DNA of 64,000 nt from Ascoidea asiatica JCM 7603 (GCA_001600695.1 BCKQ01000013.1:188045-252044); one strand, 5' to 3'. Positions 8,438 through 54,582 are shown, numbered from the stretch's first letter. Numbers and translations: made by a program. Notes: generated by a model from the letters alone, not told the origin.

Positions 8438-8558
8438 AGACCCGCACTGTTGGTAAGCCAAGAGCACCCACAAAACTGGTCTCGACAAGAAGTACCGCAA
8501 TTATGGATTCAAAATACAGACCCCAAAATCAAAGTATAAACCCCGTTTCAGGGGTCTG
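8438..8558 (+). promoter_or_regulatory. Four copies of the CC-N8-GGT(CTC) motif in the APL5/OXR1 divergent promoter
   Basis: AGACCC-gcactgtt-GGTAAG (8438), GCACCC-acaaaact-GGTCTC (8464), AGTACC-gcaattat-GGATTC (8491), CCCC-gtttcagg-GGTCTG (8541). Confidence 0.75.
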
Positions 8559-9238
8559 GAAATAAGCAATATTTATGAGATTTGATTGCTTTTGCTGTGA
8601 ATGGAGAATAAAGAATAAAGAAAGAAGGAAAAAGGAAAAAGGAAAAAGGAAGAAGGCAATAAAGAAATAAGTGAATAATTAAATGATTATATGATTATTT
8701 GAATGAATTGGATTAAATAATCAATTGAACTGAATGAATTGAATAGAATAAATCTCTAGTTTCTATAAGACTAAAGGCCAATTGATCAGATTCTTAGAGT
8801 CACTGCGTAATCAGAAATAATATTATTAATAATAATTATAATAATAATAATAATTATATCAGAACATGAGTCCTGGATGAATAACTGTAACTCCTTAATT
8901 CAAAAAAAAACATTGTTAAAAACATACTTGAATCAATTGAATATATCCATCTCAATCAATCAATTAATCAATTAATCAATAAATTGAACAATAAATTGAA
9001 CAATCAAACAATTGAACAATTATTAAAGCAGATCATCTTTCATTTTTACTTATTCTCTGTACTATTAAGCGTAATGAATTAAGCTTAAGCTTAATGACAA
9101 CTAATCTTACACTAACTTTATTAATTTTACATTCACATCTCATTCCACTATCCAATTCTTGTTATCACATTTTCAATTGAAGAAGAAAAAAATTAATTTA
9201 TTTTAAACACATTTTACCTTTTTAGTTTACTTATCATA

Positions 9239-10537
9239 ATGACAACAAATAATACAAATAATACAAATATTATAAGCAATATAAACAATATAAACAATAG
9301 CAATAGCAATAGCAATAGCAATAGCAATAATAATAATAATAATATTATAACAACTTCAATTTCAAATCCAATTCAAATTTATTCTTCTGATACTGAAAGT
9401 GAATCAAATTCAGATATTGAAAATAATTATTCAATTAGAAATTCAATAAAAAAAAATTTAAAGAATATAACTGGTAAAAATTTTAGATCTTTTTCATTTT
9501 CAAATAATTTACCAACAATTTCAAATAATACAAATAATATTAACAAAAATAATTTAAATAATTACAAATTTAATTCAAATTCAGATTCTAATTTAAATAA
9601 AAATTTAAAAAAAAGATCAACTTCAGATTCATTATCTATAAAATTTAAAAATTCAAAATTATTTAATTCAATCTTAACTACAAATAAATCAATCATCAAT
9701 ACTCCAATTAACTTAGATAATAATAATAATAATAATAATTTAGATTCTATAATGTCATTTGATCAAATACCTTTAAATAATATTAATCTTTTAGGTTATA
9801 ATTTAAAAACTAAAAATAGATTATTAAATAATGATTTAGCTGAAGAAATTAGAAATTTTTTATCTTCAAGATTACAATTATATTCAAATTGGCAATTAAT
9901 TTATTCTTTAGAACAACATGGTTCTTCTTTAAATACTTTATATAATAATTCAAAACCTGATTTTAATTATAATAATTATAAAAATTCAAATTTTTTTCAT
10001 GATCCTTTAAAAAATTCAAAAATTATTGATAATGATTATTTTTCAAATTCTTTTAAAAAATTTAATAATAATAATAATACTATAATAAATAATCATAAAA
10101 AAAATTTAGGTTTTCTTTTAATTATTAAAGATTCAAATAAAAATATTTTTGGAGCTTTTTCTAATGAAAATTTTCATATTTCTGATAATAATTCAAAATT
10201 TTATGGTAATGGAGATTGTTTTTTATGGAAATGTAAATTTACAAAATCTTTAAATCATAATAATAATGAAAAAGATAATAATTTAGAAGAAGATAATAAT
10301 AAATTACATTTACAATTTAATGCATTTCCATATACAGGATTAAATAATTTTATAATATATTCAACAAAAGAATTTTTATCAATGGGAGTTTCAAATGGTC
10401 ATTATGGTTTATGGATTGATAATAATTTAATTAATGGAATTTCAGATAAATCTTTAACATTTGGTAATGAACCATTAAGTGATTCTGGAATAAAATTTAA
10501 AATTAATGCTTTAGAAGTTTGGAAAATTGGTAGTTAA
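9239..10537 (+). CDS. OXR1: Oxidation resistance protein 1 (TLDc domain)
   Basis: WQLIYSLEQHGSSLNTLY, IFGAFSNE, FYGNGDCFLWK, GHYGLWID, TFGNEPLS, LEVWKIG. Confidence 0.93.
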   Translation: MTTNNTNNTNIISNINNINNSNSNSNSNSNNNNNNIITTSISNPIQIYSSDTESESNSDIENNYSIRNSIKKNLKNITGKNFRSFSFSNNLPTISNNTNNINKNNLNNYKFNSNSDSNLNKNLKKRSTSDSLSIKFKNSKLFNSILTTNKSIINTPINLDNNNNNNNLDSIMSFDQIPLNNINLLGYNLKTKNRLLNNDLAEEIRNFLSSRLQLYSNWQLIYSLEQHGSSLNTLYNNSKPDFNYNNYKNSNFFHDPLKNSKIIDNDYFSNSFKKFNNNNNTIINNHKKNLGFLLIIKDSNKNIFGAFSNENFHISDNNSKFYGNGDCFLWKCKFTKSLNHNNNEKDNNLEEDNNKLHLQFNAFPYTGLNNFIIYSTKEFLSMGVSNGHYGLWIDNNLINGISDKSLTFGNEPLSDSGIKFKINALEVWKIGS

Positions 10538-10621
10538 TTTATATTTATTATAAAATTCATTCATTTTTTTATATTATATTATATTCATTATATATATATA
10601 TTAGTACTTAGTTAAGTTTAA

Positions 10622-11545: not shown

Positions 11546-11752
11546 TTGAAATCATCAGATTTTATCACCATAAACACCATAAGCATCACCATTATCATCA
11601 TCATCAAGACCAACACTGATTCCATTTCTACTTGTAAATTATCTCTTTTATAAGCCATAAGAAATTAGAAATAAACCTTTATTCACTTTCCAATTTCCAC
11701 TTTCCCACACAGCAATAAAAACTGTTAACAGCAAAATAAACAATTAAAAAGA

Positions 11753-11801
11753 ACACCCGCAAAACTGGTCTCGTGTCTAATTATTCCATTGTTGTGGGTC
11801 T
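11753..11801 (+). promoter_or_regulatory. Two CC-N8-GG motif copies upstream of KXD1
   Basis: ACACCC-gcaaaact-GGTCTC (11753-11772); TCC-attgttgt-GGGTCT (11785-11801). Confidence 0.7.
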
Positions 11802-11901
11802 GCCTTTGCATGCCTTTGTATGCATTGATCTGCATTTCTTATTTTGAATATATCTTTTTTTATTCATATTCTTACTTCATCTATTATATATTTGATATAA
11901 A

Positions 11902-12889: not shown

Positions 12890-12914
12890 TTTATAACAAT
12901 AGACATTATTATGT

Positions 12915-13090
12915 ATATGAAAGAAATATCTATATTAAATGATACCTTCACCTAATACAAAACCCATTTTTATCTTTTTCAAAGGGTCTTGAAGTCTTTC
13001 AAGTTGGTTATTACAAGTTGTTGATAAAGATTTTGATCTTGGAAAACTAGTTTAAATATAAATTAAAATTTAAGTTGCTCCAGCTACTGC
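12915..13090 (-). pseudogene. Decayed internal fragment of CEM1 (inverted copy of ~34935-35120)
   Basis: Reverse complement shares exact blocks with CEM1: CAAGATCAAAATCTTTATCAAC (13020-13041 vs 34988-35009) and GGTTTTGTATTAGGTGAAGGT (12944-12964 vs 35065-35085). It contains indels and a stop. Confidence 0.9.
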
Positions 13091-15816: not shown

Positions 15817-18406
15817 TGTTGTGAAATTAAAGATGAATTTTAAGAAACTATGAACAAAAAAAGGTTAAATAAAATAAAGGAAATTAAATCAGAAATAAAT
15901 TCTAAATTAAAATATTTGATGATAAGTTAAAATAATATAATATATAATGACAAGATAATATGAAAATATAATATAGTGAAAAATTTCTAGGAATTTTAAT
16001 GAAACTTATATAAATAAATATTATATCTAAGTTGTTATGTAATTGTGTAATTGAAGTAATAAGTAATAATTAATGAGTTAAGAGTGTTTGAGTAATTGAA
16101 TACTCAAATATTTGAATAAAAAGACTTCGTATAAAAGAAAGATTATTCTATAAGTTTTTTTAATTGAAAAGCTGCTCTTATCAAGTGCTATTTTAACAAG
16201 AAACAAATGTCAGACAGATAAATAATTTAAAACGATGATTATGAGTGAGGTAATTAAATTCAAATTGAATTTCTTTATCCAATTATTGAACGACAAGTTG
16301 ATAAATAGGTAGACCAATTGATTTTGAGAACCGAGTGAATATTTAAAGGTTTGAGTAAAAAAATAGAATGTCCTCCTTGAAGAGCTTTAGTTTGATTTTT
16401 GATTGAATGATTATAAATTTGTTATTGGGAAAATGTGAGAATACTTCTTATAAGAAAAAATGGAATATCACAATCAGTTACTAATATTAGTACTTTTTTT
16501 GTAATGAGTTGTAATATTTGAGTAAATGTTGATGATATAAGAATATTATTGATGTTATTGGAATTATTGAAATATAGAGAAAATTTACCAATGTTCCATA
16601 GAAATGAAATGAAATTTGAATTCGAATGGTTGATTTGAATTTAAATATGATTTTACCACTAAGTTTACTGGCTCAGTAAATAAGATTATTTAGATAATTT
16701 GAGTATCAAGAATGAAATATTAAATAGTAATTATATAATTTAACCTAAAGTGAAAATTAAATACGAATAGAAGTTAAATAGAAATAAATAAGGAGAAGTA
16801 GAATCAAGTGGAAAAAAAAAAAAAAAAAAAGTAAAATAGAAGTGAATAAATGTTTTCAAATGTGGATTTTTAAAATTATTTATATATAAAATTCTTTATA
16901 TCAGAGTAATTTAAAGTAAATCAGTATTTATATTACAATAATATTGTGAGAATATTGTGAGAGTTACTTTTATGAAGTCAGCAGTACATTGAATGACTTT
17001 GGATTTGATTAACGAAATTCTCTTTGTTTTTTTTAAAAATCTCAAAAAATCAAAGTACAAGGAAAAATGGAATAGAAAAAAGGGTAAAAAAAATTGAATT
17101 AGTTAATTCATAATGAAATTCTTCTCGAAATATTTCTTTTGATCTTTGAATAATATTGTAGTGATTAGTGAGATTGTAAATTGATATTAAATATGTTAAA
17201 AAAAGAGCTCGTATCAAACATAAAATTAATCAATGAAATAACTGATTACTGTCGTAGTTTTAGTGAATTAATTAATAATTTTATGTACGATTACAATAAT
17301 CAATAATTAATAAAGTAACAAGTTATGATGAAATTGAGAAAATTAAAGGTGAGAATTATAATATTGATGTGAATTGTGTAAATTGAGAATTATTTTGTAC
17401 GAATGTTTTGATAAATTTATAAAATAAATATTGTAACATTACATTAAATAAATTTTGAGATTAAGTTGAGATAATAATTATCTTTCTTATTGATTAAATG
17501 GTATGGTTTACGATACGAATCGGGGATTTTTTTATTATACTTGTACTGTACAATGAATTAAAACTGAATTGAAAGTGAATTAAAAGTGAATTTGAAGAGT
17601 TAATAAAGTGACATGATTGAATAATTTTTACAAAATTTAAGAAAATAATAGTATTAGTTTGAATAATCTTATTCATCTTAGGTCAATTAATATAATTTAT
17701 AAGTAATTATAAATATTTTTATTTATTGAAAGTACGACAAAAAATTTAATTTAAAAAAAATCAATTATAGAATATATAATCTTCATAGAAATAAATTATG
17801 AACTTTATAATTTATATTTCTTATTGAAGATATCCTTAATACAATACACAATAAGTGAATTCAAATGAAACCTTGGGTATGGTAGTAATTGTGATTTAAA
17901 ATGATAATATGAAACAACTTATTATAGAAATTAATAAGATTGAGAGTAAAGTATTATTGTAATGAAATTCATATCATAAGATTTTTTTTTTTGCTCAATA
18001 ATCTTATCTTTAGAAAGAGAATCAAATTGATATTTTTTTTTGAACTAAACTAATAAATTCCTTTTTTCAAATGCTTGTAAATTTGTAATATATTCTTCAA
18101 TTGCAAAATAAAAAATTTATATGTTTTAATTGAGGATTTTCAAAGATCAAAGTTCAGGCCGGTGGAGGAGCGCCCAATTACGTAATAAAAACAGGGCCAA
18201 ACTTCAACGTGTGTGCATTATTTTACAGTTTATCACAGAGCGTGACTGTGCAGTGCTGATACTAAAAGTAGTTGCAAGCGGCGGTGGAACATATGTGTGT
18301 TTAGGCACTAAGTTCTGCAGCTAAAATGCATAGACTATGTTCCAAAAACACTGGCTGAAAGCAAGGTCACTGTATTTTGGTGAGGCCGGATGCGGTAGAG
18401 AAAGTT

Positions 18407-18423: not shown

Positions 18424-20147
18424 GTGTGTTGAGGTAAGAGAATAACGTTTTCTTAACCACAAAAACGGTCAGCCCACTGTACATAGACTAACTTAAAAGT
18501 ACATGCTCGTATCGACATATATGGATATTTTCAGTTGTGAGTATTTTCATATTAATTTTATAAATATCAATCAATATTTCGCTTGATTTTAATCAAGGAA
18601 ATAAATCAATTAGGTTTGTTACGTTTTTTAGGTTTGTTTGTTGACAAAGGTTGAGAATTTCCTTGAAAGTATCACAAGCATTTTTTTTTTTTTTTTTAAA
18701 TTGGCTTGTTTTTATTAGAAATTTTAAAAGAAGCATGAAAGTTAAGAAAATTAAAAAAGTTAAGAAAGTTAAGAAAGTTAAGTAAGAGAAAATAGCCGAT
18801 TTGATTAAGATATGAGGTTTTAATCTCTTGGGATAACCTGAAATTGATATTTATTCAGTTTTGTAGCCGGCCGGGAGAGATTCATACGTCATAGATTTCA
18901 TTTCATTTGATTTCTTCTTTTTTAAAAAAAATAAAAATTGTAAGAATTCAAACACTTGATTAACAATCGGCGTTTCAGAGACTCGTTTAAGATAAGATTA
19001 TTTTCTGAGATAAAAGATAAAATAATAAAATAAACAAAATGATATTTATTAATATTAGACTCTCGTTTTCAATACGTGTTGGGTTCAAATTTATCCGATT
19101 TACTTGAAGAATCCTTCTTTATCAGACTAAAATCAGCTCCTAAAACGGAGAGGTTACTTTTGAAGATTTTGATAAGCTTATTCATTTGATTATTTTAAAA
19201 AATGATAAGTCATTAATAAGTTCATTACGTATGACAGTCCATTAGCTTCAACTATTGATATGTTCATCACTTGCTTTTTCAATACCAAATACTAATTTTC
19301 GTTTTCTCTTTCCAAATTGCACTTTTTCTAGAACTTACTTTATCACAATAATCAACTTCAACGTTGTGAGATTCCTACAGTAGTTATCTCAAATACCTTT
19401 TTTTCTTTCACACTTGAACCTTTTGAATCTCCATGAATTCAAAAAACCAACAAAGCTAACGACCCTGATATTTTTACAAATATCGGTTTTGTTTTTGCTG
19501 CTTGCGATTCGGCCCAAGAAATAAGATCAGTGTGATCTTTCCATTACCATCCGCACGGGTCCGCAACGTGCTCATCTCCCATGTTTTAGACTGCCACAGC
19601 CGCTGTCTCGCTGGAATGTGCTGTTTCAGAATGCTGGAAGCGCGGAGACATGCTGCTTTTCACGATTTTTACGATTTTCCGTATTTACCCGTGTTTTTCC
19701 GTTTAGTCCAGCCTAAAGTAATCAACCTGCGCCACATCCACTCCACTGTTCCCCACTGCCCCTCGCCTGCACCTGCAGCGGTCACTTTTTGTCCCATTCA
19801 AAAGCCGTTAATCCGCGCTAATCCGCGCTGGCTTGTTCGGTGCTTGGCCGAGACGACCAAAAACTTTCCGGGGTTTTTTTTTCCTGCCTGCCAGCCGCCA
19901 ACGCGTCTAGCAATTATTTTTTTCAACTACTGCTGCTACCGACGCCGTTTTCACGGGTCTCCTTTTTGATATATTCAATTATAAATTAGTCGAGGTTTAA
20001 TTTCAAGAAAGTATATAAAGATCAAAATATTAATATATTTATCTATTTATCTATTTATCTATTTATCTATTTATCTATTGATTGTATTACAATAATAATT
20101 GAAAATATAATTGATAATCTCAATATTATTAACAAAAATAAAAAAAA

Positions 20148-21203
20148 ATGTTTTGGTTTTCATCTTTAAATATAACTCCAATTGAAAATTTAGAAAAAAT
20201 TATAGAATTTTCATATACAAATGATTCATATTTTATTTCTGAAAAAGATTTAATTAAAAAAAATGATTCAATTTCAAATAATAATTTATTAAATTATGTA
20301 AATTTATTTAATTATCCTATTTTCAATACAATTTTTCAATCAAAAAAGATTTTAATTGTTAAAAAACCTGAAAATGATAATGAAAATGATAATGAAAACA
20401 ATAATAAAGAATATTTAAAACCAGAATTAACTCCAAAAGTATTGAAGAAATTAATTAATGATAATGAAATTGGAGATGCAATTGAAATTGATGATGAAAT
20501 TGATGATGAAATTGATGATGAAATTAAAATTGATCAAAATAAATATTTTATTGAAATTAATGGTGAAAAAATAGATCCAGTTGAATATATTTTTAATCCA
20601 GAAAAATTTAATTATTTATTAATTTCAAATAATTTAAATAATAATTTAATTAAAAAAAAATTAAAAAAATTTATAGATTTAATTGAAGAAAAAAATAAAA
20701 TTATAAAAAATTTAAAAATTGAATCAAATAAGAAATTTAAAATGAAATTTAAAATAAAATTTAATAAGGATTCTGAAATTATTCAAAATGAGCAAAATAT
20801 CAAAATAAATTCAAATAAATTAATCTCATTCAATGAAGAAGTCAAAGTTAATACAAAAATTTCATCAATTTCATCAATTTCATCAATTTCATCAATTTCA
20901 TCATTTTCTAATTTCTTATCTATAAATTTCACGAAATTAATAACTAAAATTGATTTACATCATAAAAATAATAATGATAATTTAATTCAAAATAAAGAAA
21001 AAATTACCTCAATCGAAAATTGCAAAATCAAAGGTAAAGATAAAAGTAAAGATAAAAGTAAAGATAAAAGTAAAGACAAAAGCAAGACTCTTCAGTTGTT
21101 AAATACTCAAAAAGATTTATCAAATTTAAATAAACCTTTACCTCCACTTCCAAGTAATTTCAAAATCTTTAAAAATTATATCAATTTTTTCTTTCAGTAT
21201 TAA
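20148..21203 (+). CDS. Hypothetical protein with C-terminal NKPLPPLP (SH3-ligand-like) motif
   Basis: 351-aa ORF with host-like codon usage, TATATAAA at ~20013 and an A-rich start context; no domain recognised. Confidence 0.65.
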   Translation: MFWFSSLNITPIENLEKIIEFSYTNDSYFISEKDLIKKNDSISNNNLLNYVNLFNYPIFNTIFQSKKILIVKKPENDNENDNENNNKEYLKPELTPKVLKKLINDNEIGDAIEIDDEIDDEIDDEIKIDQNKYFIEINGEKIDPVEYIFNPEKFNYLLISNNLNNNLIKKKLKKFIDLIEEKNKIIKNLKIESNKKFKMKFKIKFNKDSEIIQNEQNIKINSNKLISFNEEVKVNTKISSISSISSISSISSFSNFLSINFTKLITKIDLHHKNNNDNLIQNKEKITSIENCKIKGKDKSKDKSKDKSKDKSKTLQLLNTQKDLSNLNKPLPPLPSNFKIFKNYINFFFQY

Positions 21204-21504
21204 AAACTTTAAAAAAACAAATTTATTTATTATTTCTTATCTTTTTCTATATAGTTTTTTTTCTTTTGACTTCTTTTGACTTCTTTTGACTTTTTTTTCT
21301 TTAAAATTTAGTTTATATTTTATATTATACATTTTATTCAAATCTTTTTTTTTTCGTTTCATTTCATTTCATTTCAATTCAATTCAAATACTGTTTGTAT
21401 ACTTTCAAATAAATGTATAATTATAGTCATGATGAAGATTCTTGAATTATTTATATTTGTTTATTGTTAAAGTTCAGACCCTTTGATTATTTCTAGAAAT
21501 GAAA

Positions 21505-21723
21505 AAGAGAACCCGCGAAGTTGGTCTCACTCCTAGAATAACCGTGATCATGGTCTCATAGACAAGTACCGCTATTATGGTCTCACCAACAAGTTCCATG
21601 ATATTGGTCTCGTGAAGAAGTACCATGCTATTGGTCTCATGAAGAAGTACCATGCTATTGGTCTCATTTATAAAAGTACCCTGTTGTTGGTCTCAAGCAA
21701 AAGGTTTCCACCATAACGGTAGA
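21505..21723 (+). repeat. Tandem array of 8 units (27-29 bp) of AAGTACC-N8-GGTCTC with variable spacers
   Basis: GGTCTC at 21523, 21552, 21579, 21606, 21633, 21660 and 21689, plus a degenerate GGTAGA at 21718; each is preceded by [A/C/T]CC exactly 8 bp upstream. Confidence 0.95.
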
Positions 21724-21728
21724 GAAAG

Positions 21729-21783
21729 ATCACCACGGGCAAGAAGATAAAAGATGGTCAAATAAAAGATGGTTTTCTTGCTT
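21729..21783 (+). repeat. Dispersed element, inverted copy of ~43812-43890
   Basis: Exact 20-mer ATCACCACGGGCAAGAAGAT (21729-21748 = reverse complement of 43871-43890), followed in both copies by AAGA[T/A]GGTC-type repeats and TCTTGCTT. Confidence 0.85.
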
Positions 21784-21803
21784 CTTGTTTCTTGTTTGTT
21801 TTT

Positions 21804-21857
21804 ACGCGTTCGGCGCTTGACCAGTCACGTGTCCTATACAAAAGATCCAAAACGCGT
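21804..21857. promoter_or_regulatory. Two MCB elements (ACGCGT) and a Cbf1-type E-box upstream of PDS5
   Basis: ACGCGT at 21804 and 21852, GTCACGTG at ~21824; cohesin genes are typical MBF (G1/S) targets. Confidence 0.75.
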
Positions 21858-22026
21858 TATTCATTCTTATTTTTATTTCTTATTTATTTATTTACTTCTT
21901 TCTTTTCTTTCTTATTTATTTGTTTATCTTCTTCTCTTTCATCTATTTCACCATCTTTATCATCCCTTTATTCAATCAATCAATCAATCAATTAATTAAT
22001 CAATCAATAAATAAATCAATACAAGA

Positions 22027-25000
22027 ATGGAATCAATAATAGATTCAACTACTGATTTTGATTCAAATCTAGATTCAATCTCTCAATCAAATATCAATAC
22101 TGATTCAATTGAAAATATAGATTCAAATATTGAATCAAATATTGAATCAAATATTGAAACAAATATTGAAACAAATATTGAAACAAATATTGAAACAAAA
22201 AAATCATTAAGAAATTTAAAATTTAATGAAAATTTAAATTCAACAATAAATTATAAAATTTCAAATAAATTAATTTTAAAAAGATTAAAATTATTATTTG
22301 AAGAATTAAAAACTTTTGATCAAGATAATATAAATTTAAATTCATTAAATAATTTAAAATTAAATTTATTTAATTTATTATTAAATAATTTAAATTTTAT
22401 TAATAATTTTAATAATTATTCAATTTTAATTTATATTTCTTTAAATTTTTCTGAAATTTTAAGAATTTATGCTCCAAATTCTCCATATAATTCAATTCAA
22501 TTAAATTTAATTTTTAAATCTTTTATAAAAAATTTTATAAATCTTTCAATTCTTTCAAATAAATATAATAATACTTTAAATAAAGATAATGAAATTTCAT
22601 ATTTAAATCAATATTTATATTTAATTAAAAATTTATCTGATTATAAAATTATAATTTTAATAACTGATTTAAATTATTCAATTTCAAAAAATTTAATAAT
22701 AAATTTATTTAATTCATTTTATATAAATTTAAAAAATTTTAAATTTAATTTAATTTTCATTAATAAAATCTCAATTCTTTTAAATATAATTATTAATGAA
22801 ATTAATAAAATTCCATTAAAAATTTTAAATTTATTATTAAATTCTTTAATTAATGATAATAATAATTTAATTCAAAATACTTTTAATTATACAAATTTTA
22901 TTTGTAATTCAAATATTATAAAATTATCTCCAATTTTAAATAAATTTATCTCAAATTCAATTAATAATAATTCAAATTTAAATATAAATGATAAAATTTT
23001 TAAAAAAATTAATAATTTATATATTAAAATTTATAAATTTATACCAGATTTATTATATTCAATTATAAATATTTTAAATAATAATTTATCAAATTTAAAT
23101 ATTAATAATAGAATTTTTTCAATAGAAATTTTAACAAATTTAATTTTATCAATAAATATAAATTCAAAATTTAATTTATTAATTAAATTTAATCAAATTT
23201 TTAAAAATTTCTTAAAAAAATCTTTTGATATTTCAATAATTATAAAAATTAAATTTATAAAAAATTTATTTAAAATTTTTAAATTTAATAAATTAAATAA
23301 TGATTTTTTCTTTTATAAAAAATTTTATTTAATAATTTTAAATTATTTAATAAATTTAAATGATAATTTAAAAAATTTAACTTTAAATTTAATTTATAAA
23401 TATTTTTTACCAAATTTATTTTTTATAAAATTTAATTATAATATTTTAATTATGAATATTTTAAAAAATTTATTAAGATCTAAAAATCATAAAATTAGAA
23501 CTATTATTATTCAAATTTTATCTACTTTATATGATTATCATTTCAATGATTTAATATCTTTTGATCAAGATATTACTCCAGATACTCAAGAGATTCAAGA
23601 AAATAAAGAAAATAAAGAAAATAAAGAAAATAAAGAAAATGAAAGTGATAATGATAATGATCATATTCAAGAAATCAAAGACATCAACGACATCAACGAC
23701 AACAACCATGACGATAATGATATAAATAAAAGATATAATATTAAACAATTAATTGGTTGGATTCCAGAAAATATTTTAAATCTTATGTATATTAATAATA
23801 TTGAAATTAATTATTTAGTTGATAAATTTTTAATTGAAAAAATTTTCACAATTCAATCAAATAATGAAATTCGTGTAAGAAGAATTTTATATATCTTTAA
23901 AAATTTAAATAAAAAATCAAAAAATTCATTTATTGCTTTAAATAAACGTCAAATTCAATTATCAAAAATTTTTAAAATTTTTTTAAAATTATCTGAAAAT
24001 TTTAATGGTGGTAATTTAAAAAATTTAACTTTAAAAAATGATTTAATTTTAAAAATTAATAATGTTATAAATTGGTTATGTGTACAAATTCCAAAAGATT
24101 TAAATACTTTTAATATTTTAAATTTTTTCATTTATTTAAATAATAAAAGAATTTATCATCTTATAAATTTATTAATTTCAACTGAAAGTAATTATGAAAC
24201 TATAAAAAATTCATTGAAAGAACTTTTTAATAGATTAAATGATCCAAATTTAATATCAAATTATAATTCAAAAAATCCAAATAATAAATTTAATATAAAT
24301 TCAATTGATTTAATTAAAAATTTTAAAATTTTTATGTATAGATCTTCATTATTTTTTTTTAATAAAAGTAATTTATCAATAATTATGTCAATTTCAAAAA
24401 ATTATAATGATAATCTTAATAAAATTGCAAATGTTTTAATTCAAGAAATTTCAAATATTTTACCAATTGTATTTCAAAATCATATTCATGAATTAAATAA
24501 TATTATTATAAATAAATCTCCAAATAAATTAAATAATAATTTTAAAAATTATTCTGAAATAAATTTACAAACAATTAAAACTTCTTTTCATTTTTTTAAA
24601 AAATATTCTGATTTTTTACCAAATGATGAAACTTATTTTATTAGTTTAAAAAATTTCTCAAAATTTGGTACTCCATTAGAATCAAAATATTCTATAAAAA
24701 TTTTATCACTTTCAAAGAAAAAAGAAAATTTATTATCTTCAATTTTTAATGATATTTATCCCTTGGAATATAATAATTCAAATTTTATAACTCATTTATC
24801 TGCAATTACAGAAATTTTTTTACATGAACCTTTAATTGTTGAACCTGAAGCAAGTGATATAACTTCATATTTAATTAAAAATATTTTATTAGAAAATAAA
24901 AGAAATTTAGATATTGATGATATTAAAAATAATAAATTAGATAAACAAAATTCAAATTTAATTACAATTGAAGAAATGGAAAAAGGTTTTCATAAAAATT

Positions 25001-26628
25001 GTTATGCAAAAGTTTTTACTTTAAAACTTTTTGTAAATAGATTAAAATCTTTAGAAAATAGTTCAACTGCAGAAGAATTAGGTGCCATGGTACTTAAACT
25101 TTTAATTTCTTTAATAAGTAATGGTGGAGAAATTGTACCTTCAAAATCAAAAAGTTTTCCAACTCCATTAAATTATCAAACAACTTTAAGATTAACTTCA
25201 GGTTTAATGATTTTAAAACTTGTTAAATTACCTATATATAGTAAAATGGTAAAACCAGTAACAACAAATAGATTAATTTATTTAATTCAAGATGAAAATA
25301 TTGATGTAAGACGTGAATTTATTACAAAATTAAAAAAATATATAAATAATGAAGAAATTTCTGAAAGATTTTTACCATTAATTTATTTTATGGCTCATGA
25401 ACCTAATGAAATTTTAAAAAATGATATAAAAACTTGGATTAGATCTTCATTTCAAAGAAAATTATTAAGTAAAGATGATAAAAAAGATATAAAATTTGAA
25501 AAAAGTTTTGTAAGAATGTTAAATATGATTACTCATCATCATGAATTTATTGATTTAATTGAAAAAGCTAAAAATTTAAATTTTGATATAGAAGAAAATG
25601 ATAATGAAATTAATAAAGAAAATAAAATTTTTGAAATTAAAAAAGAAAAAAAATCTCATTCTGAACAAGGTTTATTTGAAGCATATAGTTTTGCAATGGC
25701 ATATATAACATTTTATTTAGATGTAATTGCAACTGCAGAAAATATATCATTATTATATTATTTTTGTAATAGAATAAAACAATATAGAGATGCATTAATT
25801 CCTTCAGAAAATTATGAAAAAAAAAATCCACCAGATTCAACATTTAATCTTTATAGAATTTCAGAATTAGGTTGTATGATAATTAAATCATTATCAAATC
25901 ATAAAGGATGGATTTTACAAACTTGGCCAGGTAAAATTCAATTATTTGCAGATTTATTTAGTCCAATGAAATCATCATCTGAAGCACAAAAAATAGCTTC
26001 AAGAATTTTTATTCAAGAATCTCTTGTTAAAAAATTACAAGAATATATTGAATTAGAAGTTCATAAAATGACATCAAGTAAAAAGAAAAAAACAGTAATA
26101 TCAAGTTTAAAAAATTCAAATGAAAAAAAATCAAAAATAAATACAAAATTTGAAAAAAATGAGAAATCAGAGAAATCAGAGAAATCAGAGAAATCAGAGA
26201 AATCCAAATCTTTAAAAAGGGGTAGAAAGAAAAATTCGGATAATAAAAGTTCATATTCTGGGAAAAGGGGGAAAAAAATGAAAGTTGACCAACCTCTCAG
26301 ACGTAGTTCTCGAAATAGAAAAGTTGTTAATTATGGAGGAGAATCTGATGAAGAAGATGAAAGTGAGGAAGAATTAGAAGAAGAATTAAAAGAAGAATCA
26401 GGATCAGAATCAGGATCAGAATCAGGATCAGGATCAGAAGAAGAAAAGGAATCACATAATAAAGAAGATACGGAAGATACAGATGATTTACAAAACATAG
26501 GAAATATAAATGATATAGAAGATGTAGAAGATGTAGAGGATGTAGAAAATATGGATGATATAGGAGATGTAGGAGATATAAGTGATATAGAAAATATGAG
26601 TGATATGGGAGATATAGAAGATATATGA
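22027..26628 (+). CDS. PDS5: Sister chromatid cohesion protein Pds5
   Basis: EILRIYAPNSPY, IGWIPENILNLMYINN, FGTPLESKYSIKIL, LKLFVNRL, QDENIDVRREFITKL, AENISLLYY..RIKQYRD, LYRISEL, WPGKIQLFADLF. Confidence 0.93.
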   Translation: MESIIDSTTDFDSNLDSISQSNINTDSIENIDSNIESNIESNIETNIETNIETNIETKKSLRNLKFNENLNSTINYKISNKLILKRLKLLFEELKTFDQDNINLNSLNNLKLNLFNLLLNNLNFINNFNNYSILIYISLNFSEILRIYAPNSPYNSIQLNLIFKSFIKNFINLSILSNKYNNTLNKDNEISYLNQYLYLIKNLSDYKIIILITDLNYSISKNLIINLFNSFYINLKNFKFNLIFINKISILLNIIINEINKIPLKILNLLLNSLINDNNNLIQNTFNYTNFICNSNIIKLSPILNKFISNSINNNSNLNINDKIFKKINNLYIKIYKFIPDLLYSIINILNNNLSNLNINNRIFSIEILTNLILSININSKFNLLIKFNQIFKNFLKKSFDISIIIKIKFIKNLFKIFKFNKLNNDFFFYKKFYLIILNYLINLNDNLKNLTLNLIYKYFLPNLFFIKFNYNILIMNILKNLLRSKNHKIRTIIIQILSTLYDYHFNDLISFDQDITPDTQEIQENKENKENKENKENESDNDNDHIQEIKDINDINDNNHDDNDINKRYNIKQLIGWIPENILNLMYINNIEINYLVDKFLIEKIFTIQSNNEIRVRRILYIFKNLNKKSKNSFIALNKRQIQLSKIFKIFLKLSENFNGGNLKNLTLKNDLILKINNVINWLCVQIPKDLNTFNILNFFIYLNNKRIYHLINLLISTESNYETIKNSLKELFNRLNDPNLISNYNSKNPNNKFNINSIDLIKNFKIFMYRSSLFFFNKSNLSIIMSISKNYNDNLNKIANVLIQEISNILPIVFQNHIHELNNIIINKSPNKLNNNFKNYSEINLQTIKTSFHFFKKYSDFLPNDETYFISLKNFSKFGTPLESKYSIKILSLSKKKENLLSSIFNDIYPLEYNNSNFITHLSAITEIFLHEPLIVEPEASDITSYLIKNILLENKRNLDIDDIKNNKLDKQNSNLITIEEMEKGFHKNCYAKVFTLKLFVNRLKSLENSSTAEELGAMVLKLLISLISNGGEIVPSKSKSFPTPLNYQTTLRLTSGLMILKLVKLPIYSKMVKPVTTNRLIYLIQDENIDVRREFITKLKKYINNEEISERFLPLIYFMAHEPNEILKNDIKTWIRSSFQRKLLSKDDKKDIKFEKSFVRMLNMITHHHEFIDLIEKAKNLNFDIEENDNEINKENKIFEIKKEKKSHSEQGLFEAYSFAMAYITFYLDVIATAENISLLYYFCNRIKQYRDALIPSENYEKKNPPDSTFNLYRISELGCMIIKSLSNHKGWILQTWPGKIQLFADLFSPMKSSSEAQKIASRIFIQESLVKKLQEYIELEVHKMTSSKKKKTVISSLKNSNEKKSKINTKFEKNEKSEKSEKSEKSEKSKSLKRGRKKNSDNKSSYSGKRGKKMKVDQPLRRSSRNRKVVNYGGESDEEDESEEELEEELKEESGSESGSESGSGSEEEKESHNKEDTEDTDDLQNIGNINDIEDVEDVEDVENMDDIGDVGDISDIENMSDMGDIEDI

Positions 26629-27266: not shown

Positions 27267-27728
27267 TTAAGTTGAAGTAGTTGTTGTAGTTTCTGGAGTT
27301 TCTTCATTAGTTGAAGGAGTTCTAACAAAGTAATTTCTAACAGAAAGATTCATTCTATCAAAAGAATGTAAAGTTCTTAAACCAAAATCATCTAATCTAT
27401 CAATTGTATTTTTACCAACTTCACCAGTATGAGTTCTAACATATTGAAAAGAAGGATTAATAAAAGGATGAGCAGTTTTAATAATATTACCAAGACCCCA
27501 ATAAGTTTCAACATGTTCCATTGTTAAAGATCTTATAACAGGATTTGATTGTTCATTAACTTCTTCAACAGAAGGGATTTCAAGAGCAGGAGCTGTAGAA
27601 GGTTCAGGAGCAGCAACAACTGGAGCATCAGGAGTAGTCATTTCTGAAGAATTATTATTATTATTATTATTATTATTAGAAGAAGAAGAAGAAGAGTTCA
27701 ATTGTCTAAAAAAAGAACGAATTGGCAT
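27267..27728 (-). CDS. Small protein resembling the N-terminal part of fungal perilipin-like (Pet10/Sps4/CAP20) proteins
   Basis: S..MEHVETY...DRLDDFGLRTLHSFD resembles the family pattern 'S..HL..YP...LD.FGD..L..(V/F)D'; codon usage looks like a real gene. Confidence 0.5.
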   Translation of the reverse strand: MPIRSFFRQLNSSSSSSNNNNNNNNNSSEMTTPDAPVVAAPEPSTAPALEIPSVEEVNEQSNPVIRSLTMEHVETYWGLGNIIKTAHPFINPSFQYVRTHTGEVGKNTIDRLDDFGLRTLHSFDRMNLSVRNYFVRTPSTNEETPETTTTTST

Positions 27729-28641: not shown

Positions 28642-28665
28642 AAGAAGTACCGTGTTTCTGGTCTC
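28642..28665 (+). promoter_or_regulatory. Single consensus motif copy
   Basis: AAGAAGTACC-gtgtttct-GGTCTC. Confidence 0.75.
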
Positions 28666-31607: not shown

Positions 31608-31631
31608 AAGAAGACCCGTGAAAGTGGTCTC
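31608..31631 (+). promoter_or_regulatory. Single consensus motif copy
   Basis: AAGAAGACCC-gtgaaagt-GGTCTC. Confidence 0.75.
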
Positions 31632-39864: not shown

Positions 39865-39898
<34 letters not shown>

Positions 39899-41590: not shown

Positions 41591-41640
41591 AAGAAGCACC
41601 AGGTTCATGGTCTCTCAGTCGGATCCGCAGAGCTGGTGTA
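41591..41640 (+). promoter_or_regulatory. Two motif copies in the ORM / 41933-ORF divergent promoter
   Basis: AAGAAGCACC-aggttcat-GGTCTC and GGATCC-gcagagct-GGTGTA, 26 bp apart. Confidence 0.7.
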
Positions 41641-42898: not shown

Positions 42899-42917
42899 TA
42901 TATTATTTTATTTTCAA

Positions 42918-43694
42918 TTAACAAAATTTCTTAAAACAAACTTGTAAGATTTTTAAAATAATATTATTAACCTCATCATTATTGTTATTACCATTATTAT
43001 TATTATTTTGTTGTTGTTGTTGTTGATATGGAGTATTGGGTTTATTGTAATTATTAATATTATTAGAAGTATTAACATTAGTATTATCTCCAAAATATTT
43101 ATAATCATAATTTCTTGAAGTTATAGTATTAATATCATTAGCATTAATATTAGTAATATCAATAATTAAAACTCCAGAATTTTTTGGATTTAAATAATAA
43201 GAAATATTTAAATCTTTACAAAATTTTTCAATTTCTGGTTTAATTTTATTTATATTATTTTTTGAATGTTTACCTTTTCCAATAATAATTTTAAAATTAT
43301 TATCAATATCATTTTGAAAACCATTTAAAATTTCAAATTTTATTCTTTTTTTAATAAATATTAAACTTTCTTTAATATATAAACCATGTAAATCAATTTC
43401 ATTAATTTTACTATCATTATTATTTTTTATAAAAACATAATTTGCAGCTTCTTCATTTTTTAATTTACTTAAATTTGAAAATTCTTTAGCTTTTAATTTA
43501 TTTCCATTTTTAAATAAATTTTGAGATTTTTTTGATAATTTTCTTGCATCATTTCTTAAAATTTTATATTTTTCATCATTTGAATGATTATAAAATTTAT
43601 TTTTATTATTATTATTATAATTTTCAACTTCTTTAGGATCATCATCTTCTCCCAAATAAAAACCTGTTTCACCACCATAGTACTCTTCACTCAT
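42918..43694 (-). CDS. DUF1771 + Smr domain protein (Ypl199c-like)
   Basis: LRNDA..SQNLFKNGNK.KAKEFS..EEAANYVF..NN..EIDLHGLYIKE..IIIGKGKHS..KIKP..NSGVLII. Confidence 0.88.
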   Translation of the reverse strand: MSEEYYGGETGFYLGEDDDPKEVENYNNNNKNKFYNHSNDEKYKILRNDARKLSKKSQNLFKNGNKLKAKEFSNLSKLKNEEAANYVFIKNNNDSKINEIDLHGLYIKESLIFIKKRIKFEILNGFQNDIDNNFKIIIGKGKHSKNNINKIKPEIEKFCKDLNISYYLNPKNSGVLIIDITNINANDINTITSRNYDYKYFGDNTNVNTSNNINNYNKPNTPYQQQQQQNNNNNGNNNNDEVNNIILKILQVCFKKFC

Positions 43695-43740
43695 TTCAAA
43701 TAAACCAAATATAATAATAACTAATATTTCACACTAAATC

Positions 43741-43890
43741 AAATCAAATGAATGACTAATTTGAATAACAATCCTTCAATAGTATTAGAAAATGAAAGAG
43801 AAGAACTAAATAAAAGCAAGACCATCTCAGACCATCTCAGACCTTCTCAGACCTTCTCAGACCTTCTTTGATCTTCTTGCCCGTGGTGAT
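43741..43890. repeat. Composite dispersed repeat: 43754-43808 resembles 12133-12197 (direct); five 10-bp AGACC[A/T]TCTC-type units; 43871-43890 equals 21729-21748 (inverted)
   Basis: GACTAATTTGAAT..AATC....A.AGTATTAGAAAATGAAAGAGAA shared with 12133 onward; exact 20-mer shared with 21729. Confidence 0.8.
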
Positions 43891-44242
43891 TGTGAAGTTG
43901 AGTGTCTTCTCTCCACGCCACCCACTTTCCACTTTCCTTTTTTTAATAACTCGGCTAGTGGTTACTGAGCCGCATTTGCTTTAAATAAGCAATAAAGGCT
44001 GGACTTGTGGCTGTGTGTAGATCTCGTTCCTTCATTTCCATTTCCATTTCCATTTCTATTCCAATTTCAGATCTTCTTCTTGCTTTTGTTGTTTCTTCTT
44101 TTGAATCTTCTTTTGAATCTTCCTTTGCTTGTTCAAAAGTCACTAAGAAGTATCAAGTAATTGGTAAGAAGTAGGAAGTAAGAACTAGGAAGCAAGAAGT
44201 AGAAGGTGATAGATAGTAGATAATAGATAATAGAATAAAATA

Positions 44243-44740
44243 ATGGTTAATTCAATTCATATAAATAATAGAAATAAAAATAAAAGAGAATCAAGAAGAG
44301 AATCAAGAAGAGAATCAAGAAGATTTACAAATAATAATAATAATATTAATGTTTCTTTTAAATTGAATAATGATGAAATTAATCCTTCTTTAATAATTAA
44401 AATTATTTATAATCCAAATAATACTTTATTTAAAGATATAATGGATTCTAAAGATTCTAAAGATTCTAAAGATACTAAAGATACTAAAGATATTAAAGAT
44501 GGAAAGGATAATATAAAGAGTATTAATATAAAGAATAATAATATAAGAATAACAAGATCAAGATCAAATTCAACTTTACCTATTCCTTTTAAAGATTCAA
44601 TTAATAAAGAATTAACTATTAATGAATCTAAAGAACCTAAAGAACCTAAAGAATCTGAAGAAATAAATAATATTGATATTGATATAATTGGTGAAATTGG
44701 TATAACTGGTTTTCCATTAAGTACTTGTCCTCCAATAAAT

Positions 44741-44805
<65 letters not shown>

Positions 44806-45407
44806 CGCTGATACTTTAAATTTAAATAATTTAAATAATTTAAAAGAATTAAATTTTAAAAAAAATTTAAAAACTAAAAATTCAAAAAAATTAACTAAAA
44901 TTTCAAATTTAAGATATTCTCAATCAAATAATTTATTACCAATAAAAAAATTATTTCATGAAAATTTTCAAAATGATTATTTAAATAATTATGTTATTAA
45001 AAATTTTATAAAAAATGAATTTACTTTATTAGATAAATATTCTCATCTTAATGATAAATCAAATAATAAATCCTCTAATAATAAAGATAATGATGATTTT
45101 TGTTCAGTTTGTGGTGAACCTGGTTATTTTATATGTTGTGAAAATTGTCCAAAATCTTTTCATTTTACTTGTTGTTATCCACCTTATGATAAAAATTCTT
45201 TACCAAAAGGTATTTGGTATTGTAAAGAATGTAAAATTAAAAAAATTTCTATTCAAAATTTAAATAATTTATATTTTAAAAATTTTAATAAATTTGGTGG
45301 AATTTTTAAAAATTTATTAATTAATATTGAAAAAATTAATCCAATAAATTTTAATTTACCAAAAAAATTATTATCTTCTTTTAAAGATATTAATATTATT
45401 AATAATG

Positions 45408-45439
<32 letters not shown>

Positions 45440-46009
45440 TTGGAAAATTGTTGTTATAAATGTGGAAAATTTGGTAAATTAAATAAAAATTTAATAATTT
45501 GTAATTTTTGTAATTTATTTTGGCATCTTGATTGTTTAAATCCTCCATTAACTTCAATAATAAAATTTAAAAATAAATCTTGGAAATGTCCTTTACATAT
45601 AGATGATTTATTACCTTTTAAGAAAAAAAATAAAATTCTTAAAAAATCAATTTCAATTATTCCAAATTCAAGATTTTTTAAAAATAATGGTAATATTGAA
45701 ATTTTAAATATTGAAGATGAAAATAATTTATATAATAATAATAATAATAATAATATTAATAATAATATTAATACAATTTTAGATAATAATTTTAATACTA
45801 AAAATGGTATTTCTTCAAATTATTCAAAACAAATGTTAAAATTAATTAAAAATAATGATAAAATTATTTATAAAATTCCTGAAAGATTAATTATCCTTGA
45901 TTTCATCTCAACTATTAATAATAATAAAAATATTCATTTATTTAATTTATTTAAAAATTATAATAATTTAAATTTAAATATCATTAATCAATTTTTAAAT
46001 GATCTTAAA

Positions 46010-46051
<42 letters not shown>

Positions 46052-48149: not shown

Positions 48150-48259
48150 TTTTAAATCTTCTTTAAACTCTTTAAAGTAATAAATTGTCAATGAAATGTC
48201 TTTTTTTTTTTCAAATAATTATAAAAATAAAAATTGTAGTCACCCATATACTCATTTAT

Positions 48260-51223: not shown

Positions 51224-53833
51224 TTATATAACGTTATTAATGTTTGGTAAAGAGATTTGATTAATGTATTGTAATTTTTGAAAATCTTTAAAATTTGGAT
51301 CATTTAAGAAATTGAATAAAATAATATCATTAATAATTAAATTTGAGATTAATCTTTGAGAGTTTATTGAAATTTTATTATCTAAAACAAAACTCATAAT
51401 TAATCTTGAAACGTATAAAAATTTATTTGTATTTGAAAAATTTAAAATATCATAAGTTATTGAATCATTTTGAAAGTTAGGAATATAATTATTGTAATTT
51501 TGATTTAAAGTAGGGTTGGGATTTTGATTTTGATTTTGATTTGTATGTAAATTTTGATTTTGATTTTGATTTTGATTTTGATATTGATATTGAAATTGAT
51601 ATTGATTTTGAAATTGATATTGATATTGATATTGATTTTGATTTTGATATTGATATTGATTTTGATTTTGATTTGATGATAAAACTAAAGATTGTGAATT
51701 ATTTATGATATTATTATTTGGAGAAGAATTGAATTGAATACCATTATTATTTAGCATATCATTATTTAAATTATCAATAATATATTGTTCTCTTTTAATA
51801 TTTAAATTATTTTTTGGTTTACCAAATTTAACTTGACCATTATTATAAGATAAAACAGATAAAGGATTATCATTATTATTATTATCATTATTATTATTAT
51901 TTGGCATATTATTTAAATCAATAAAATTAGTATTTTCAGTGTATTGATTTGGATTATATTGATTTTCAATATATTGATTTTGATTTTGATTTTGAATTGG
52001 GATTTCATTTCCATTATTATTATTATTATTATTATTTTTATTAATATTTTCATATTCATTCATATTTTCATTATTATTATCATTACTATTATTATAATCA
52101 TAATCAATTGAATTTTGAATGGTATCACCATAATAATTATAATTATTTGAAATTATATTATCTTTAGCTTTAATTAAAAATTTATGAAAAATTATAAGAT
52201 AATCACAAGCATGTGGTATACAAAATTTTTTAAACCAAGATTTTTTTTGTTGAAATTTTTTATAAATTAAATAATTTTCTTTATTTAATTTATTTTTTTT
52301 TCTTAAATTAATAATATTTGAATTTGGTTTTAATTGTAAATTTATATTAATATCATTTAAATCATTATCATTTAATAAATCATCATTTGAACTAATATTA
52401 TTAAAATTTTGTGGATAAAAATTTTTTAAATTTTTAAAAAAATTTTCAACTTCATAATTTTCTAAATTAAATGAATTTTTTTTATAATTCCAATTTAAAA
52501 ATAAAGAAAAAGAATTTAAAATAAAAAATTTCCAATATTTATATTCATCTTTTAAAATTTTAAAATGTTTTTTTAATTTTGATTTATGAAATTTATTAAC
52601 TTTTGCTTTTAATGGAAAATTTAAATTTAAATTTTTTGTTATAAAATTCCAAGAATTTAAAGAAAGGTAACATTCATCAATATTTAAATTTAAATTTTTT
52701 TTTAAAAATTTTATATTTTGAGGATTATTAAATTCATTAATTAATAAAGTTATAAAAAGGTTATTCATTTCTTTTGACCATTTTGAAGCATCAATTTGAG
52801 TTCTATCTCTTTTTTTATAAGTTCTAGTTGTAGTTTTAGTAATTTTTGAAATTTTTGGTGGTATTGAATTTGATAATTTTTCTAATTTTACTTCATTAAC
52901 TTCATTACTTACTTCATTACTTCCTTCATTACTTACATCATTACTTACTTCTTTACTTACATCATTACTTACTTCATGACTCTGACTATCATTATCTATT
53001 TGCTTATCGTTATCGTTTTCGTTTTCGTTTTCGTTATCATTATCATTATCTAATTGATTAACATTATTTAATTGATTATCAGTATCTAATTGAGAATGAG
53101 ATTGAGATAGTGGAACAGGTGAATTATTTAATGAATTACCTAATGAAGTATTATTTAGGTTATCATCTGCAATATCATTTTCATTTTCATTATCATTATG
53201 AATATCATTATGAATATCATTAGGAGTATTATCTTCGATATCATTTTCAATATCATTTTCGATATCATTTGAATTGATATTAGAGATATTAATTAAATTA
53301 TCATTAGAATCATTAATTGGAATATTAATTGGAATAATATTTTGATTATCGAGATTAGATTGATTTAAATCAATATTTAATTCATTATCTAATTCATTAT
53401 TTAATTCATTATTTAAGTCATTATTTAATTGATTATCTACATCATTATTTGAATTATTTTTTGAATCATTATTTAATTCATTTGAGATTGTATTTAAATC
53501 AGATTCATTTAAATCATCATAATTTGAAGGAATTGAATCATTTAAAGAATTTGAAAGTTTTGAAAGTTTTGAAAGTTTTGAAATTTTTGAAGGTTTTACA
53601 CTCTTTGTAGATTTTGAAATTTTTGAAGTCTTTGAAGGTTTTGTAATCTTTGATTTTGTAGGTTTTGTAACTTTTGATGTCTTTGTAGTAGTAGTGGTAG
53701 TAGAAGTAGTCTTTGTAGTTTTTGAAGGTCTTGAAGATCTTGTAGATCTTGTTGTCTTTGTAGGTTTTACAATCTTTGTAGGTCTTGTATTTGGTCTTGA
53801 ATAATTTTTAGATAATTCTAAAGAATCTGACAT
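51224..53833 (-). CDS. Low-complexity protein with a central Myb/SANT-like (Myb_DNA-bind_3 / Harbinger ORF1-type) DNA-binding domain
   Basis: KWSKEMNNLFITLLINE...SWNFITKNLN..F..SKLKKHFKILKDEYKYWK...WN (~52470-52786); K/S/T-rich N-terminus, QN/QY repeats and a small helical C-terminal domain. Confidence 0.65.
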   Translation of the reverse strand: MSDSLELSKNYSRPNTRPTKIVKPTKTTRSTRSSRPSKTTKTTSTTTTTTKTSKVTKPTKSKITKPSKTSKISKSTKSVKPSKISKLSKLSKLSNSLNDSIPSNYDDLNESDLNTISNELNNDSKNNSNNDVDNQLNNDLNNELNNELDNELNIDLNQSNLDNQNIIPINIPINDSNDNLINISNINSNDIENDIENDIEDNTPNDIHNDIHNDNENENDIADDNLNNTSLGNSLNNSPVPLSQSHSQLDTDNQLNNVNQLDNDNDNENENENDNDKQIDNDSQSHEVSNDVSKEVSNDVSNEGSNEVSNEVNEVKLEKLSNSIPPKISKITKTTTRTYKKRDRTQIDASKWSKEMNNLFITLLINEFNNPQNIKFLKKNLNLNIDECYLSLNSWNFITKNLNLNFPLKAKVNKFHKSKLKKHFKILKDEYKYWKFFILNSFSLFLNWNYKKNSFNLENYEVENFFKNLKNFYPQNFNNISSNDDLLNDNDLNDININLQLKPNSNIINLRKKNKLNKENYLIYKKFQQKKSWFKKFCIPHACDYLIIFHKFLIKAKDNIISNNYNYYGDTIQNSIDYDYNNSNDNNNENMNEYENINKNNNNNNNNGNEIPIQNQNQNQYIENQYNPNQYTENTNFIDLNNMPNNNNNDNNNNDNPLSVLSYNNGQVKFGKPKNNLNIKREQYIIDNLNNDMLNNNGIQFNSSPNNNIINNSQSLVLSSNQNQNQYQYQNQNQYQYQYQFQNQYQFQYQYQNQNQNQNQNLHTNQNQNQNPNPTLNQNYNNYIPNFQNDSITYDILNFSNTNKFLYVSRLIMSFVLDNKISINSQRLISNLIINDIILFNFLNDPNFKDFQKLQYINQISLPNINNVI

Positions 53834-54407
53834 TATGATATAAATATGAATATAAATAAGTAATACAAAATGGAGATTGTAAGAGATTAAGAAGTATAAG
53901 CGGTATAAGAAATATAAAGAATATAAAAAAGTAGATAATAAAGAATAAAGAATGAAATATAAAAGTATTGAAATGAATGTAGAATGAAAATAGATATAAA
54001 AAAAGAAGAGAAAAAAAGTAAAAAAAAGAGGAAATTGGAGATTATTTAAGGAATTTGAAATTAGAATGAAGAATCAGAATCAAAATCAGAAGTAAAAGCA
54101 GTTTTAGAAGACAAACAATGAAAAATGCGGTAAATTCATCTGAAAACACAGCAGAAATTGAGAATTGAGGAAAGAGGAAAGAGGAAATAAAACAGTAAGT
54201 TTAGAAGCGAAGAGTGACTCGTGCGCGATCGCCGGCAGAACTGAAATTCGGTGGCAAGAAAACATAAAAAGAAGAAAAAGAAGAAAAAGAAGAAAAAGAA
54301 CTCGAAACACGGGCAGCAGATTCTGGTGCAACAAAATTGAACAAGATTCTTGCTGCTGCACTTGAAACACCGGGAAAAAGATGTGGTGGCGTGAGGGAGT
54401 GGCTCAG

Positions 54408-54582
54408 AGAAGACCCGACATTATGGGGTTACACACGTCACATGATAAGAAATGCCATGTGATTAAGAGCTGACAAGTTAATGGTCTTGTAGGTGTCATG
54501 TGATAATGGCTACCAAGTTAATGGTCTTATTTATGTCACATGATTGGAACATCCGTTAAAATGGCTTTGCTTATGTCATGCC
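54408..54582 (+). repeat. 40-bp-period composite array: E-box-like G[T/C]CA[C/T][A/G]TGAT plus the CC-N8-GGT motif
   Basis: E-box-like words at 54437, 54454, 54495, 54535 and 54575 (partial); ATGGTCTT/ATGGCTTT at 54481, 54521 and 54561; AGAAGACCC-gacattat-GGG at 54408. Confidence 0.85.

Follow-up and report, generated by a model that had tools for sequence, protein, structure and literature searches.

A two-part, asymmetric motif of 23 bp with rigid spacing was found in a 64-kb stretch of DNA from Ascoidea asiatica (hereafter the window) and throughout the genome of this species. It is a real, genome-wide element. Judged by its sequence, it is an undescribed, promoter-side element that is neither an Abf1 nor a Rap1 site by their defining consensus, and it is probably the binding site of an abundant, sequence-specific general regulatory factor of Ascoidea. 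Such a factor would serve this genus as Abf1, Reb1 and Rap1 serve baker's yeast. No description of the motif was found in a literature search. Few general regulatory factors of yeasts are known and their rise across thousands of promoters is poorly understood; their turnover between yeast lineages is already known. The window corresponds to positions 188045-252044 of contig 13 (C13) in a 20.3-Mb, 71-contig assembly (21.6% GC). Its CEM1, PDS5 and MSN5 products all have their closest named relatives in A. rubescens (66%, 47% and 77%, respectively). Note that an inverted fragment of CEM1 is found by self-comparison of the window (Table 1).

Definition of the motif

A weight matrix was trained on the intergenic DNA of C13:1-260000, strong sites being those that score above 15. 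It detects 57 sites in this DNA and 3 in the reversed sequence. The consensus derived from the matrix and from the genome-wide site list is A-G-R-A-(G/C)-W-M-C-C-R-Y-R-W-W-W-N-T-G-G-T-C-T-C, in which CC, T and GG are near-invariant. An earlier note, made from the window sequence, had described fixed AAGAAG and GGTCTC arms around a variable 8-bp spacer. This description requires correction in all three parts: the left arm is AGRAG-W-M, the spacer is constrained to R-Y-R-W-W-W-N-T, and the right arm varies, with GGCGTC (60 copies genome-wide versus 4 in the control), GGATTC and GGTTTC also in use.

The two arms are interdependent. Within C13:1-260000, CC is in register for 26 of 30 intergenic TGGTCTC sequences, while TGG is in register for 17 of 52 left arms at one offset only, versus 0-1 at shifted offsets. 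The arms are only pseudo-symmetric, so that a single two-domain protein fits as well as a dimer; the general regulatory factor proposed earlier is retained, but it need not be dimeric.

The window carries 18 strong sites and about 6 weak ones (Table 1), in agreement with the some 20 copies with a fixed 8-bp spacer reported at first. CC is found eight bases upstream of 12 of its 14 GGTCTC sequences, and AAGAAG..CC-Nn-GGTCTC occurs with n=8 only. Among the weak copies previously listed, those at 18456 and 34143 have matrix scores below 3 and do not hold; those at 19944 and 19546 are sites, starting at 19941 and 19543, but they read better on the minus strand.

Table 1. Motif copies and other features. 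Plain numbers are window positions; contigs (C) and further sequence loci (L) are named where they apply.
Feature	Position	Strand	Context
Two strong sites 27 bp apart (starts 8461, 8488)	8461..8510	+	Divergent promoter, AP-3 adaptin gene / TLDc gene
Diverged copies flanking this pair (weaker-site start 8536)	about 8435-8457 and 8536-8558		
CC-N8-GG with diverged right arm	8442 and 21708		
Strong single site	11750..11772	+	Upstream of KxDL gene
Weak neighbour of the KxDL-gene site	11782-11804	-	
Inverted CEM1 fragment, 77% identical	12944-13086 vs 34937-35085		22 kb from intact gene
Single strong site, score 15.7, missing from the earlier list	17867..17889	-	
Weak site, score 8.6	19543..19565	-	GC-rich island
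Strong site, GGCGTC right arm	19941..19963	-	~190 bp upstream of ORF at 20148
Seven strong head-to-tail sites, periods 29, 27, 27, 27, 27, 29	21506..21694	+	PDS5 promoter
Diverged eighth unit	about 21701-21723		After PDS5 array
Two MCB boxes (21804, 21852)	within 21804..21857		Between array and PDS5 start
Cbf1-type E-box	21824-21831		Between array and PDS5 start
Strong single site	28643..28665	+	260 bp beyond 3' end of MFS gene; about 930 bp upstream of ORF at 27728 (-)
Strong single site	31609..31631	+	175 bp beyond ATP13 3' end; about 950 bp upstream of MFS gene
Strong site and weak neighbour 26 bp on (starts 41592, 41618)	41592..41640	+	ORM gene divergent promoter
Myb/SANT-like (PF12776-type) gene, lineage-restricted	51224..53833; L028:14923-17076; L024:5263-6618	- (window)	Beside 40-bp MSN5 array (window)
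One weak (54408) and three strong sites (54466, 54506, 54546), 40-bp period	54408..54568	+	Divergent promoter, MSN5 / Myb/SANT gene
E-boxes	54437, 54456, 54497, 54535		Interleaved with MSN5 array
5.1-kb inverted duplicate, 99.9% identical	C13:87096-92178 (L009:7096-L010:2178) and C13:111178-116262 (L012:1178-6262)		
Decayed 2.5-kb element, two inverted copies	C13:3190-5655 and 43212-45727 (L001, L005)		
RNase H1 gene, C-terminal part	C13:185970-186225 (L019:5970-6225)	-	Region first scored convergent
Broken Mutator-like element	C7:840917-843038		
Broken Crypton-like remnants	C7:852687-854115; C15:229471-230346; C47:16410-17006		
Reb1 sites near the motif (examples)	C1:493658; C1:554085; C4:887532		Within about 60 bp of motif
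714-codon frame, two AFT-like domains	C3:1136060-1137727	+	
Rap1 DNA-binding-domain genes	C8:74867; C2:1676925	+; -	
Long intact GCR1_C frames	C2:2280974; C2:2284179; C1:742493		
CCR-N6-TGG sites of W. ciferrii	L025:9604, 9873, 12451		

Occurrence in the genome

The strict form CC-N7-TGGTCTC occurs 700 times in the genome (357 forward, 343 reverse) versus 21 times for the reversed-pattern control. The spacing that is one base shorter yields 62 matches, most of which are shadows of N8 sites beginning CCC; the sharp N8 peak of the spacer histogram anticipated in the earlier note is thus present genome-wide. The core CCRY-N5-TGG is found 4521 times, a count in which some palindromic sites are scored twice, versus 1509 in the control, an excess of ~3,000 distributed over both strands. 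CCR-N6-TGG is the top-ranked spaced dyad of intergenic DNA (p ~1e-26). Clusters occur once per 9 kb without strand polarity along contigs: the all-plus-strand picture first drawn (14:0 in the window) is local and vanished at the genome scale.

Genomic location

Positional statistics were obtained for 260 kb of contig 13 (C13:1-260000) with ORFs called in this analysis, and the figures of this section refer to that region unless stated otherwise. Sites are found in 10 of the 26 regions between divergent genes, in 13 of the 33 tandem ones and in 2 of the 26 convergent ones, the contrast between promoter-containing (23/59) and convergent regions (2/26) having p=0.004. About 40% of genes have an upstream site. 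Of the two convergent exceptions, one coincides with the truncated end of a 5.1-kb duplication and one is located upstream of an RNase H1 gene that was overlooked at first. Note that no long ATG-initiated frame covers the 5' part of this gene (intron or frameshift). Coding DNA is avoided, and the four matches within ORFs, all in short frames that coincide in part with the GC-rich island, are probably spurious. The intergenic location first reported is therefore borne out, as a promoter-side location that avoids coding and convergent regions. Sites show no preferred orientation towards the gene (7:6). They lie ~200 to 1,400 bp from the start codon and, within tandem regions, are frequently nearer to the 3' end of the upstream gene than to the next start. 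The motif had been taken to mark many GC-rich islands. It does mark many but not most of them: islands contain or adjoin 18 of 28 clusters, and a site is present in 17 of 45 islands. Cbf1-type E-boxes are found near 5 of 28 clusters where 1.6 are expected (~3-fold, p about 0.02-0.03), in line with a general regulatory factor.

This distribution bears on two alternatives. The first is an ordinary, abundant activator or repressor dedicated to a regulon, rather than a chromatin-organising general factor. The composite arrangement with E-boxes and MCB boxes would suit it, and arrays at particular promoters could be dose-dependent enhancers. It is nevertheless improbable, as about 40% of promoter regions carry the motif and their genes are unrelated. 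The downstream genes code for, among others, cohesin, an exportin, a Zn-cluster factor, an aminotransferase, a DEAD-box helicase, Tim54 and a PUF protein, in keeping with the functional unrelatedness noticed among neighbouring genes in the window. The second alternative, a non-transcriptional chromosome element such as a replication-origin helper, a roadblock terminator or a cohesin/condensin anchor, would account for the many tandem-region sites that lie 90-580 bp from the 3' end of the upstream gene and farther from the next start codon; known general factors also do these jobs (PMC12904797). It is given little credit, for the true convergent regions, in which two genes terminate, are devoid of the motif, and clusters have the density and lack of polarity described above. 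A binding site for a general regulatory factor remains the preferred reading.

Several Reb1 sites are found within about 60 bp of the motif (Table 1), and on contig 1 three of 11 Reb1 sites lie within 300 bp of it.

Arrays

Head-to-tail pairs of sites number 93 genome-wide versus 8 in controls, and 20 of 21 neighbouring sites on C13 are on the same strand. Their periods, counted by hand from the listed coordinates in a searched range of 24-32 bp only, are 24 (0 pairs), 25 (0), 26 (9), 27 (26), 28 (29), 29 (17), 30 (6), 31 (5) and 32 (1). A floor at 26 bp for a 23-bp motif suggests a protein footprint, and the peak at 27-28 bp in these sequences suggests contact between neighbours, that is, close-packed cooperative binding. 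Arms and period are kept within arrays while spacers and linkers drift. Spacers are more alike between neighbours than between different arrays (3.75 versus 2.36 of 7 positions), so that part of the arrays can be accounted for by local duplication, with no need for cooperativity. In the array at MSN5 the period is 40 bp and every gap holds an E-box, which is a composite-promoter design. The fixed 27-28-bp register would be an unusual and measurable signature of cooperative binding.

The sequences that flank arrays are mutually unrelated, and for the PDS5 array a single other array gives a match, confined to the units; the motif is therefore not a mobile element. An origin from a mobile element or LTR was rejected on the same grounds, the duplicated array of C13 belonging to a duplication of 5.1 kb that carries a gene. 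This inverted duplicate, with its gene and a six-unit array, is either a recent duplication or an assembly artefact; one of the copies has its gene broken into two frames.

A related proposal is that the motif is the recognition site of a recombinase or transposase, or the footprint of a Crypton or Mutator-like element. As in FRT and loxP, the arms are inverted around an asymmetric core of 8 bp, and broken Crypton-like and MULE remnants exist in the genome. The motif arms are, however, 7 bp long and unequal instead of 13-bp inverted repeats, the cores differ between copies, flanks share nothing, and recombination at thousands of active sites would disrupt genome order. Genome searches returned no Phage_integrase match; Flp was also unmatched, with an uninformative Flp control. 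Only NDC10_II-type remnants with stops were detected, and no intact recombinase gene. The tyrosine-recombinase reading, ranked as the weaker one from the start, is accordingly very improbable. The Mutator-like element (Table 1) consists of an AFT-like domain with stops followed by a MULE domain, and is flanked by a Reb1-type 9-mer in two inverted copies, probably its terminal repeats. The three Crypton-like remnants carry NDC10_II with stops, two of them beside GCR1_C. A decayed 2.5-kb element without long frame is present in two inverted, 78%-identical copies on contig 13, whose start resembles a gypsy-type RNase H fragment.

Least probable of all is that the motif derives from telomeric repeats, or that it is a structured RNA or an artefact of base composition. 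A telomeric origin would fit the Rap1-like left half and the co-oriented tandem arrays, but the listed contig ends have no runs of identical units. No Rfam or tRNA match was found, reversed-pattern and spacer controls are low, and the window stretch 20000-25900 is present in sequencing runs of two studies.

Comparison with known binding sites

Sixteen consensus strings were compared with the matrix, those of Abf1, Aft and HpRap1 being taken from papers. None of the 16 matches the whole matrix. The strings rejected as not fitting the whole motif include those of Abf1, Rap1, Mcm1, Zap1, Reb1, Tbf1, Cbf1, Gcr1, Rme1, Aft, GCM and the W-box; for Mcm1 (CC-N6-GG) and Zap1 (ACC-N5-GGT) the spacer histograms peak at 8. 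The absence of a match to known factors claimed earlier thus stands for the motif as a whole, but its left half approaches Rap1 and its spacing is that of Abf1.

Canonical Abf1 sites number 451 genome-wide versus 1808 in the reversed control, and 2 versus 11 in intergenic DNA. This control is inflated by CpG avoidance; there is still no sign of Abf1 enrichment. Canonical Rap1 sites are not enriched (5 versus 2). Reb1 (94 versus 14) and Cbf1 sites (27 versus 4) are, which indicates that the test can detect a motif in use. As Abf1 and Rap1 signals are not enriched, promoters are probably organised by another general regulatory protein.

The Abf1 site of Saccharomycetaceae is RTCRY-N5-ACGR (PMC5291244) and is read by a bipartite DNA-binding domain (PMC8708972). 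Its spacing is identical to that of the motif (two fixed bases, RY, five loose, three fixed) and it is likewise used in either orientation at unrelated promoters. The motif differs at three fixed bases (TC to CC, ACG to TGG), extends over 23 bp, additional flanks included, and occurs in phased arrays, and the Abf1 consensus misfits the matrix. A profile search of the genome with BAF1_ABF1 (PF04684) gave no match, its positive control being also silent.

The Rap1 site is ACACCCRYACAYY; Rap1 sites, among them those of the H. polymorpha paralogues HpRap1A and HpRap1B, consist of two halves in direct repeat (PMC6510891). Among the 16 strings, the Rap1 consensus, with its first nine letters, gives the best fit to the left half (p=0.01 uncorrected, not significant after 16 tests), followed by Rme1, GCM and Aft2. 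Co-oriented tandem sites are a further likeness. Where the left half is compared with the first half-site of Rap1 (ACACCCRY / ACATCCRY), G is commoner than C at position -3. The motif lacks a directly repeated second half-site, positions +5 to +8 being poorly constrained and rich in A/T. Its second fixed block is inverted and lies 5-7 bp farther out, and copies keep a 26-bp floor between them.

As blocks of the CACCC-R or ACCCGCA type, the Aft site BRCACCCB and the GCM site resemble the left half (p=0.10 and 0.06, respectively; PMC1702500, PMC4161868), and Rbf1 of C. albicans, of the WRKY-GCM1 family, binds a Rap1-type RPG box (PMC7000152). The known sites of Aft1/Aft2, Rbf1 and GCM are single short blocks without the inverted second arm of the motif. 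A search for the GCM family was blank, with an uninformative control. No member of the WRKY-GCM1 family is known to act as a genome-wide general factor.

Lineage-specific general regulatory factors are found elsewhere, namely Sap1 in fission yeast and Cbf1 and Tbf1 in Candida. Ascoidea would resemble these lineages in having its own abundant promoter-organising factor. The motif is unrelated to their sites in sequence, is longer, and forms close-packed arrays in ordinary promoters.

Conservation in related yeasts

In 34 kb of intergenic DNA of A. rubescens the pre-specified core is found at 14 loci, where other spacers give about 3 (P about 1e-5); the total includes 3 versus 0.25 in a locus added afterwards. 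The bare CC-N8-GG pattern, applied first, gave no peak. Left flanks of these core copies are often similar, and the TCTC arm is absent. No arrays were seen in the A. rubescens sequence examined, PDS5 included, nor in the orthologous PDS5 promoter of S. crataegensis. The core was not seen in small samples of S. crataegensis (17 kb), Pachysolen (7 kb) and one further yeast contig, so that the lineage-specificity first proposed agrees with the data. In W. ciferrii three CCR-N6-TGG sites occur in just 2.7 kb of intergenic DNA (Table 1). The drift of the right arm between the two Ascoidea species makes the origin of the factor testable, as do the Abf1-like spacing and the Rap1/Aft-like left half.

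Proposed mode of action and candidate binding proteins

Two DNA-reading domains, of one protein or of an asymmetric dimer, would contact the two arms with a footprint of ~26 bp. Neighbours would touch, giving a short run of bound proteins on some promoters. Binding would keep the promoter nucleosome-free and aid other factors; transcription running on from the upstream gene may also be stopped. The long, abundant and easily synthesised site offers a direct pull-down route to the protein.

Candidate genes were located by family searches that gave positions only (Table 1). The tentative first choice is an AFT/WRKY-GCM1-type protein, led by a 714-codon frame of contig 3 with two AFT-like (WRKY-GCM1) domains ~350 codons apart, in which no MULE catalytic domain was found. 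The WRKY-GCM1 family has repeatedly yielded factors from transposases, including Aft1/2 and Rbf1 (PMC1702500), and the layout of the frame recalls the split DNA-binding domain of Abf1 (PMC12904797). Some other protein would come next in likelihood. Less likely than this is one of two Rap1 paralogues, whose genes are present in a genome where canonical Rap1 sites are nearly absent; Rap1 duplication has been placed in the methylotroph clade only (PMC6510891). A GCR1_C protein and a multi-finger C2H2 protein are both doubtful binders. Three long intact GCR1_C frames exist, and some left arms of the motif read CWTCC; multi-finger C2H2 genes are also present in the genome. It is conceivable, at about the level of the first candidate, that the role of Abf1 and Rap1 has been taken over by a transposase-derived, two-domain WRKY-GCM1 protein or by a Rap1 paralogue whose second half-site is new, bound head-to-tail on the 27-28-bp arrays. 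If so, the spacing identical to that of Abf1 would point to a shared origin, and the system would show the birth of a general regulatory factor and the drift of its site.

The Myb/SANT gene of the window is the least likely of the named candidates. A nearly identical domain is present in A. rubescens and also in S. crataegensis, in whose 17-kb sample the motif was not seen, which makes the gene a weak candidate. The protein has just three relatives in a 50%-identity library of 1.8 billion representatives, one being from S. crataegensis, in whose copy PF12776 is recognised. It features a small conserved C-terminal domain, and its gene is found near ARX1 in all three species.
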